From positions 42,718,001 to 42,782,000 of the forward strand of contig NC_088859.1 in assembly GCF_963853765.1 (NCBI RefSeq): 64,000 nucleotides of DNA, written 5' to 3'. Below the pieces are notes generated by a model that was not told the origin of the DNA, ran no database searches, and saw nothing but the letters and a program-made list of their open reading frames with translations. This document shows positions 15,458 to 16,622 of the stretch, in pieces (position 1 is the stretch's first letter; each line of letters opens with the position of its first letter). The DNA comes from Magallana gigas (lineage: Eukaryota). Made by a program: the position numbers and the translations under genes.

Positions 15458-16622
15458 ATGGCTACCGCGTCTCTCACTGCTGAGTACGCTAAATCTGGCA
15501 AGGCGGGCTGTAAAGGGTGCGGAAAGTCCATTGACAAGGGGGAACTCCGCATAGGATATGTCGGGAAGGCAAACTTCGGAGCTACGGCGTGGTATCACTA
15601 CGATTGTTTATGGGCTGATACAGACAGTCTTAAATCGGTCGACGCGTCCAAATCGGCAAAGGTTTTGGTGCAAAATTACGACAGTCTGAAGGGTGAAGAC
15701 AAGAAGAAACTGGATAAAGATTTTCCCAAGTTTTGCAAGGAAGCATCCACAAAAGCAAGCAAAGCTGAACCTAAGCCGAAATCTGATTTGGCGGCAGAAT
15801 ATGCACCGTCTGCCAAGTCTAACTGTAAAGGATGTTCAAAACCCATCGGCAAGTCCACGCTGCGCGTGGGATTCCCAGGTAAGGCAAATTTCGGCGCCAC
15901 TGCCTGGTATCATTATGACTGCGTGTGGAAGGAAAGTGTTCTTCTAGCACCTATTGATACTTCTCAAAGTTTAGAAGAAACTGTGGATGGGTTCGAAAAA
16001 CTGAAAAACGAGGACCAGACAAAACTTAGCAGCGATCTGAAGAAAAACTGCAAAGCAGCCGCAGAGAAAGAGCCCCCTTTGCCGCCAAAAATGGCTGCAG
16101 ATTATGCGAAGTCTGACAAATCGGAGTGCAAAAGCTGCGCCACAAAAATTGCCAAGAATGCCTTACGTGTAGGGTTCACTGGCAAGGCAAACTTTGGGGC
16201 CGTGGCATGGTATCATGTAGATTGTCTGAAGAAATGTCCACAAGAATACTCGAAAGGAATTAAGGCAGATAAACCATTGGAAGAACTTGTCGATGGCTTC
16301 GACAAACTGAACAAAGATGATCAAAAGAAAGTAGAAAAGGAAGTGAAAGCTTTGGCTTCTCCTACAGGAGCACCAAAACGAAAATCTGAGGGCGAAGGTT
16401 AGGAAAATTGTTGTACATCTTCCCTTGAGCAATTTTTGAATACATGTACTTGTACTATTTGAAGAACCTTCCGTTATGTTTGGCAAAATGTTTAACGTAA
16501 CACTCCCAAACTAATTATAACTGTGCATCCTCATTTTTTATTCATACAAATAAATAGTTGAATGTTTATTTTTTCTTGCAGAAAGTGCAAAAGCGTCTCC
16601 CGCGAAGAAGGGCAGGAAGTAG
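15458..16622 (+). CDS. Stand-alone protein with three PARP-type zinc fingers, no catalytic domain; 2 exons (15458-16397, 16582-16622), 326 aa
   Basis: Three repeats of A[ED]YA.S.K..CK.C...I.K..LR[IV]G..GKANFGA.AWYH.DC, each followed by a Y/F-x-x-L-x-x-[ED]-D-[KQ] helix. Phase-1 intron G|GTTAG...TTGCAG|; basic C-terminus KRK..SPAKKGRK*; AATAAA at 16769. Confidence 0.9.

Follow-up and report, generated by a model that had tools for sequence, protein, structure and literature searches.

A transcribed oyster gene encoding a three-finger PARP-type zinc-finger protein, probably a nuclear and non-catalytic binder of DNA nicks and ends

Among sensors of DNA strand breaks, PARP-type zinc fingers (zf-PARP) are understood best. 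To our knowledge, nearly everything that has been learned about them comes from fingers that are tethered to an enzyme, as in PARP1, DNA ligase III (LIG3) and plant ZDP. The reference fold, represented by the PARP1 fingers F1 and F2 (Zn1 and Zn2) and the LIG3 finger, consists of a three-stranded sheet and two helices (PMC3094755). Human PARP1 grips the phosphate backbone with R18 and R122 and uses F44 or L161/I164 in the base-stacking loop, and D45 of Zn1 is required for activation but dispensable for DNA binding (PMC8150716). Mutation of K119, S120, R122, R138 or W157 in human F2 markedly weakens single-strand-break binding, with a smaller effect at K134, and position 135 is a glycine in F2 and LIG3 and an aspartate in F1 (PMC3094755). 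LIG3 employs a single zf-PARP finger as a nick sensor, and plant ZDP combines an N-terminal array of at least three fingers with a C-terminal PNK3P phosphatase. The apoptotic 24-kDa fragment of PARP1 comprises the DNA-binding domain (DBD) and lacks catalysis. The fission yeast protein Hpz1 is nuclear and non-catalytic; it combines a single zf-PARP finger with an acidic C-terminal region, and in other fungi it forms a fusion with Rad3/ATR. In bivalves, zf-PARP fingers without an ART domain also occur in fusions with PC4, an ssDNA-binding domain, as reported in scallop (PMC9223095).

What does a zf-PARP array do when it is attached to no enzyme at all? In the 64,000-nucleotide stretch of Magallana gigas DNA analyzed here (the window), we find a stand-alone, complete and transcribed gene whose product is made of three such fingers. 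By profile, zinc ligands, predicted fold and contact residues, the product is a member of the zf-PARP family, and it is neither PARP1, LIG3, ZDP nor Hpz1-like. A literature search retrieved no functional study of the zf-PARP array family in bivalves. We propose that the oyster protein is probably a nuclear, non-catalytic binder of DNA nicks and ends.

The gene lies on the + strand at window positions 15458-16622 and has two exons, whose coding parts of 940 and 41 nt amount to 326 codons and a stop codon (Table 1). Before intron removal, the frame at 15458-16402 (+) in the open reading frame list is 314 aa long. An in-frame TAA is located 12 nt 5' of the ATG, the RNA data list no splice upstream of the ATG, and the transcript start falls between about 15277 and about 15400. 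The sole splice listed inside the gene joins 16397 to 16582 (GT..AG) and is found in four of four runs: two of raw polyA RNA reads, with 4 and 16 reads across the junction, and two of RNA contigs. The assembled transcript contigs (1190 and 1204 nt) are spliced, span 15277/15397 to 16661/16763 and end past the stop codon. In addition, a low-depth RNA contig located within the intron suggests minor intron retention; the retained form yields a 314-aa protein without the last basic cluster.

Table 1. Window coordinates of the transcript and protein features of the three-finger gene
Feature	Position	Strand	Details
5' UTR	15277..15457	+	RNA contigs start at 15277 (X8) and 15397 (X2); stranded depth from bin 15303-15469
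Coding exon 1	15458..16397	+	313 codons + 1 nt; all three fingers; open reading frame list, Pfam, junction in 4 runs
zf-PARP finger 1	15473..15736	+	aa 6-93 (hmmsearch limits); ligands C18, C21, H47, C50; further residues K12, S13, K15, K27, R31, F40, W45 (PARP1 Zn1 alignment)
zf-PARP finger 2	15788..16051	+	aa 111-198 (hmmsearch limits); ligands C123, C126, H152, C155; further residues S118, K120, K132, R136, F145, W150 (PARP1 Zn2 alignment)
zf-PARP finger 3	16091..16357	+	aa 212-300 (hmmsearch limits); ligands C224, C227, H253, C256; further residues K218, S219, K221, K233, R237, F246, W251
Bipartite NLS-like tail, first half (PKRKSEGE)	16373..16397	+	KRK invariant across orthologues
Intron	16398..16581	+	184 nt, GT..AG, phase 1; polypyrimidine tract before acceptor AG
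Coding exon 2	16582..16622	+	13 residues (second basic cluster KKGRK) + TAG; C-terminus identical in P0001
3' UTR	16623..16805	+	AATAAA at 16769-16774; RNA depth 0 after bin 16639-16805

Stranded polyA RNA-seq (two runs) covers the locus in a single orientation, is limited to approximately 15300-16805 and falls to zero downstream. Splicing onward into a catalytic domain, which was looked for specifically, is ruled out by these stranded reads, by the transcript contigs and by the positions of candidate exons. Genome searches found no PARP-catalytic exon near the gene, the nearest on the same chromosome being 5 Mb away, and no PNK3P exon either, the nearest being 1.9 Mb away. The neighbors within the window are ordinary host genes that encode STIL, MED26 and a protein with a WKF domain. 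P0001, a 326-aa database protein that represents 234 sequences and derives from an assembled contig of ~1.25 kb, is 98% identical to the window protein and has the same spliced C-terminus. It was used as a stand-in for the window protein in the profile, fold and tree work, and exon 1 was searched directly. Thus, the complete 326-aa gene with a stop codon and AATAAA that had been read from the letters alone is borne out by the sequence, the splice reads and P0001, and the polyA RNA establishes that the locus is transcribed and spliced. The transcripts contain 13 polymorphisms, of which eight are synonymous and five are non-synonymous and conservative (F89L, D154E, K199E, K258E and D279N). None of the 13 affects a zinc ligand or a DNA-contact residue, and both this placement and the split are consistent with purifying selection.

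Pfam recognizes three zf-PARP (PF00645) stretches in the protein (E 3.6e-55, 185.1 bits against a cut-off of 39.3) and no further significant domain, including Zn3/PADR1, BRCT, WGR, ART, ligase and phosphatase/PNK3P. Three C-x2-C-x25-H-x2-C motifs, each with a GKANFG loop, occupy residues 18-50, 123-155 and 224-256. Such a three-motif pattern is far above chance, and together the Pfam stretches and the motif positions confirm the original prediction of a protein that consists of three fingers and no other domain. The motifs conform to the zf-PARP ligand pattern C-x2-C-x~28-30-H-x2-C, although the loop is three residues shorter than that of PARP1 Zn1 (x25 versus x28). The protein is lysine-rich and net basic, with 57 K+R against 44 D+E. 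As in PARP1, the fingers are followed by a basic bipartite segment that resembles a nuclear localization signal (NLS). Given its resemblance to the NLS segment of oyster PARP1, this tail may serve as an NLS. The domain content sets the oyster protein apart from each described system. It lacks the Zn3/PADR1, BRCT, WGR and ART domains of PARP1, its transcript ends at ~16800 and the PARP1 gene proper is located on another contig (C6). Like the 24-kDa fragment, it combines DNA binding, which is predicted in the oyster, with the absence of catalysis, but it is encoded by a separate gene and is neither a cleavage product nor an isoform. It shares an array of at least three fingers with plant ZDP and lacks the PNK3P phosphatase. 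There is no ligase domain as in LIG3, and compared with Hpz1 it has three fingers, a basic tail, a net positive charge and no link to Rad3/ATR.

The residues that human F2 uses to contact DNA are kept in the oyster protein. Every finger retains the CCHC zinc site, basic residues in loop 1 and on the beta-sheet and the aromatic base-stacking residue, features by which PARP1 F1/F2 and the LIG3 finger recognize DNA discontinuities irrespective of sequence. K119, S120, R122, K134, R138 and W157 all have equivalents in finger 1 (K12, S13, K15, K27, R31 and W45) and in finger 3 (K218, S219, K221, K233, R237 and W251). In finger 2, S120, R122, K134, R138 and W157 correspond to S118, K120, K132, R136 and W150, and a proline replaces K119. 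The zinc ligands are invariant in eight orthologues, as are the DNA-contact equivalents, where present, in eight of eight. Because the contact residues are both kept and invariant across orthologues, break binding can soundly be inferred from the sequences, in line with the DNA-end and nick binding proposed originally. A lysine stands at the R18/R122 position in all three fingers (K15, K120 and K221), so that the predicted change of the phosphate-gripping arginine to lysine is present throughout. However, it is not distinctive, since Zn2 of oyster PARP1 also reads KSGK, and the change is therefore better regarded as a habit of the lineage than as a mark of altered function. The phenylalanine said to be kept in the base-stacking loop indeed aligns with PARP1 F44. 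The adjacent position of the Zn1 'activator' residue Asp45 is a glycine in the oyster fingers. The F1-type aspartate at human position 135 is found in none of the three fingers, and finger 1 has the F2/LIG3-type glycine there. The K141/K142 basic patch of PARP1 F2 is not kept in place. Given this displaced patch and the shorter base-stacking loop, affinity and lesion preference could differ from those of the PARP1 fingers.

The predicted structure agrees with the residue comparison. An AlphaFold2 model built from an orthologue alignment (mean pLDDT 80) contains three separately folded fingers, each predicted as a three-strand sheet with helices, the C-terminal of which is longer. The finger-end helices (79-102, 184-204 and 286-300) extend into K/E-rich linkers, and the tail (304-326) is predicted to be disordered. 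A Foldseek search with this model retrieved PARP1 F1F2 on nicked DNA (2n8a, E 3e-15), single Zn1/Zn2 chains (TM 0.77-0.82, 2.1-3.2 A) and, after these, the LIG3 finger. For finger 3 alone, the best match among solved structures is the DNA ligase III finger (1uw0). All three fingers are thus predicted to adopt the zf-PARP fold.

In a whole-genome scan, the gene is the only, single-copy locus of the stand-alone zf-PARP array type, and each of its fingers scores 63-68 bits alone. The other zf-PARP loci of the genome are the oyster's own LIG3-type finger (L001), which resides on another chromosome (C3) and belongs to a different clade, the PARP1 gene on C6, in which introns interrupt the fingers and which matches P0050 at 92-100%, and a PC4 fusion on C9 (L006). 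The finger of the latter is single and divergent, scores 32 bits, below the Pfam cut-off, and sits on a long branch unrelated to the three-finger family in the tree.

The oyster protein belongs to a family that is already in public protein sets, where it is unnamed or mislabelled as PARP1-like. A word-indexed search returned ten clusters of 224-331 aa, each with PF00645 only. The Saccostrea cucullata member (74% identity) is labelled 'uncharacterized protein', and the Pinctada imbricata member, which has two fingers, is labelled 'hypothetical protein'. Two-finger proteins of 221-222 aa from five Mytilus species (cluster P0009) bear the labels 'PARP1', 'PARP1-like' and 'uncharacterized', and one further cluster carries the automatic JGI label 'bifunctional polynucleotide phosphatase/kinase'. 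Overall, the orthologues from Saccostrea, Pinctada and Mytilus range from 221 to 331 aa and have two or three fingers and PF00645 only. The window protein is 52-98% identical to the Saccostrea, Pinctada and unnamed clusters, one of which holds Mytilus proteins, and displays the traits of the bivalve array family, namely the GKANFG-type loop, the x25 spacing, the KRK-containing tail and no other domain. The orthologue protein models diverge directly after KRKSEG, which hints at conservation of the intron and of the neighbors in other bivalves. A scan of metagenome contigs with P0165 yielded no confirmed orthologous locus.

A search of 1.84 billion representatives with an eight-member three-finger profile returned 1366 hits at E <= 1e-3 and 14 at E <= 1e-30. 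The 14 strongest are bivalve clusters or fragments and plant ZDP-type proteins, which have 3-11 fingers and mostly a PNK3P domain. No protein in this search of 1.84 billion representatives joins GKANFG-type fingers to another domain. Short two-finger hits in tick, sea cucumber, Drosophila and Artemia are named PARP1, PARP isoforms, PARP-like or 'putative poly', and we read them as PARP1 fragments or isoforms. Every named family member so far is from an oyster, a pearl oyster or a mussel, a statement that covers the named hits in a library clustered at 50% identity. The original prediction that catalysis-free versions are rare thus holds in that the family is confined to bivalves among named hits, but it has to be qualified for plants, in which some ZDP-type multi-finger arrays are predicted to have no phosphatase domain.

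Where did the fingers come from? The bivalve fingers form one clade in a FastTree analysis of 254 fingers (support 99) and in two IQ-TREE analyses (96/94 and 97). Each of the oyster fingers 1, 2 and 3 clusters with its counterpart of the same number in Saccostrea, P0007 and P0008, and the three-finger array is therefore older than the splits between those lineages. In the P0006 lineage, fingers 2 and 3 pair together, which indicates an independent duplication or gene conversion. In one tree, a nematode finger is nested in the bivalve clade on a branch of 1.84, and we treat it as a long-branch artefact. The three oyster fingers are each other's closest relatives, with 47-54% identity among them, compared with 37-45% to the oyster's own PARP1 fingers and 30-45% overall to oyster PARP1 Zn1/Zn2, the LIG3 finger and plant ZDP fingers.

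These relationships bear on whether the gene could be a non-functional product of PARP1, such as a recent truncated duplicate or retrocopy, or an annotation fragment that is drifting to a pseudogene. The arrangement of the gene invites the suspicion. Nearly the whole coding sequence lies in one exon, while the oyster PARP1 fingers are intron-split; fingers 1 and 2 are collinear with Zn1-linker-Zn2 of PARP1; the tail resembles the PARP1 NLS, with which it has KRK, ESAK and a KK.[KR]K cluster in common; and some databases label the mussel members 'PARP1'. However, the likeness of the tails is at most suggestive. An intron inside the NLS in common with PARP1 was checked for and is absent, as the PARP1 NLS resides within one small exon, and the intron of the array gene is away from the PARP1 NLS intron position. 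The identities, the trees and the non-shared intron positions rule out a recent partial duplicate of PARP1. Moreover, the fingers belong to one family clade, within which each of the three has its own orthologues in distant bivalves. The reading frame is uninterrupted, no functional residue varies, the gene yields a spliced, polyadenylated transcript, and synonymous polymorphisms outnumber non-synonymous ones. We consider it highly improbable that the gene is non-functional.

The trees weakly favor plant ZDP fingers as the nearest relatives. The bivalve clade is sister to the ZDP fingers in two trees (91/80 and 76.9), near Zn2-type fingers, but placement with Zn1 (p-AU 0.127) or with Zn2 (p-AU 0.363) is not rejected by AU tests on 85-93 alignment columns. 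Accordingly, the architecture survey and finger tree that had been suggested at the outset recover a stand-alone family and a single clade, but they do not discriminate among an affinity to PARP1 Zn1, PARP1 Zn2 and ZDP. The sister relation raises the possibility that the oyster protein acts in trans as the targeting part of a split ZDP, docking on nicks and using its helical linkers to recruit PNKP, a 3'-phosphatase or some other partner. The best-scoring non-bivalve relatives of the family are indeed the plant ZDP-type proteins with 3-11 fingers and PNK3P, and in ZDP the fingers, which serve the phosphatase in cis, are considered to sense nicks (PMC10573277). We nevertheless regard such a targeting role as unlikely, given the weakness of the sister relation, the partly additive nature of profile scores over many fingers, the lack of an identified interaction motif and the unlinked position of the oyster PNK3P gene, 1.9 Mb away.

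A multivalent binder of DNA breaks is the most likely reading of the protein, judging from its sequence, its predicted model and the analogy with PARP1. The bipartite basic tail would direct nuclear import, and the three independently folded fingers, joined by helical K/E-rich linkers, would bind nicks, gaps and ends regardless of sequence. One molecule, carrying up to three binding modules, could hold several breaks simultaneously or the two sides of a single break. Lacking an enzymatic domain and any known domain for recruitment, the protein would most likely work by occupying breaks, which it would shield or mark, and by competing there with PARP1, LIG3 and enzymes that process ends, or timing their access. 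Occupancy by a bare DBD has a precedent: overproduced PARP1 DBD blocks repair synthesis and isolated DNA-binding fragments bind breaks (Molinete 1993, cited in PMC3094755). A specific competitor role is less certain than that of a nuclear non-catalytic break binder. On the roles suggested originally, namely PARP1 decoy, end-bridging factor and sensor of transposon or viral DNA, the present observations bear in neither direction. In its explicit form, the protein would be a bivalve DBD-only counterpart of PARP1, a trivalent nick and end binder that competes with or gates PARP1, LIG3 and PNKP at breaks and regulates break signalling in a manner equivalent to the apoptotic 24-kDa fragment or to PARP trapping. 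We advance this form tentatively, as a conceivable but rather doubtful specialization.

Hpz1, which had been named originally as an example of a catalysis-free version, does qualify as a non-catalytic zf-PARP protein but is of another type, with one finger and an acidic tail. Being the one studied finger-only protein, it weighs against break binding as the role of the oyster protein, because it acts on G1-S timing and is no major repair factor: it is nuclear and expressed in G1 and modulates the G1-S transition, with no more than mild UV/HU sensitivity. By analogy, the oyster protein could be a chromatin or cell-cycle factor that binds undamaged DNA structures, such as linker DNA, hairpins, cruciforms or replication intermediates, and modulates transcription or S-phase entry. 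PARP1 itself has also been described as an architectural protein of chromatin that binds undamaged DNA (PMC6135609), and the oyster gene appears to be broadly expressed, as the 234 sequences of the P0001 cluster come from transcript-size contigs. However, with its single finger and acidic tail, Hpz1 is no orthologue of the oyster protein, and the residues kept in the oyster fingers are those that have been shown to mediate strand-break binding. A role confined to undamaged DNA therefore seems improbable to us, and we favor the nuclear break binder.

A conserved and expressed animal protein that consists of three zf-PARP fingers only is a natural experiment on the effect that break binding has by itself in vivo. 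Such a naturally occurring 'sensor-only' protein should be of moderate interest to DNA-repair specialists, and its small nick- and end-binding module, which is possibly multivalent, could be used as a probe. The family also exposes a database problem, as mussel members are labelled 'PARP1' despite lacking every catalytic domain of that enzyme. For the bivalves themselves, the three-finger protein would represent a lineage-specific addition to the DNA-damage response, and a DBD-only counterpart of PARP1, if true, may play a part in their unusual biology under genotoxic stress.

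On one oyster contig, a divergent PARP-type zinc finger (zf-PARP), which scores 32 bits, under the Pfam cut-off, is joined to a PC4/p15 ssDNA-binding domain. The zf-PARP and PC4 architecture has been reported for scallop PC4 genes, and the oyster fusion has the same domain architecture (PMC9223095). In the oyster PARP1 gene, introns interrupt both fingers, and the bipartite NLS is contained in one small exon. Zn2 of this protein carries Lys (KSGK) at the position of the human R122 "backbone grip". The genome's best exons for a PNKP-type phosphatase (PNK3P) reside on the same chromosome as the three-finger gene, 1.9 Mb downstream, which is probably a coincidence.

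Outside animals, zf-PARP fingers form extreme arrays in two proteins. P0011 from the plant Mikania micrantha (1376 aa) contains 11 fingers and a PNK3P remnant, and P0140, a transcript-derived protein of the dinoflagellate Polykrikos kofoidii, has four fingers with short loops and lacks a long tail. In P0023 from the unicellular opisthokont Pigoraptor chileana, three fingers precede PADR1 (Zn3); this layout is a PARP1-type N-terminus plus one extra finger. Fingers 1 and 2 of P0023 are both of the Zn1 type and arose by a recent duplication.

Features in the window and at other oyster zf-PARP and PNK3P loci
Feature	Location	Strand	Description
C and G homopolymer tracts	window 14380-14405, 14930-15060, 15220-15262		long; just upstream of the three-finger gene
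RNA contig	window 16421-16533		within the 184-nt intron of the three-finger gene
DIRS-like retroelement	window 50131-53806	-	
Tyrosine-recombinase ORF of this element	window 50134-51081		Phage_integrase
Two long ORFs	window 56825-59875	-	800 aa and 210 aa
zf-PARP and PC4 fusion	L006:1468-2328 (G000:C9, about 49566250-49567110)		single-exon ORF, 286 aa
PARP1 gene	L009 (G000:C6:36972000-36981999)
PNK3P exons	G000:C7:44674965-44675738

Within the window, the recombinase ORF of the retroelement adjoins a 763-aa ORF that encodes RT and RNase H and gives a weak match to a Dam-like methyltransferase. The two other long ORFs yielded no Pfam match at E <= 0.001. The C/G tracts attract very deep pile-ups of reads in the RNA runs, as well as loose ends of poly-G or poly-C and joints of the "opposite strand" kind. 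This RNA signal probably represents low-complexity or sequencing artefacts on the repeat rather than real transcripts.

RNA was also assembled inside the intron of the three-finger gene, at a depth of about 9 versus 95 for the exons. Because several orthologue models of the three-finger protein part ways exactly at the intron site, there is a hint that the intron is conserved among orthologues. An intron-retaining transcript would encode a protein that ends in ...SEGEG and lacks the second of the two clusters of basic residues in the NLS-like tail.
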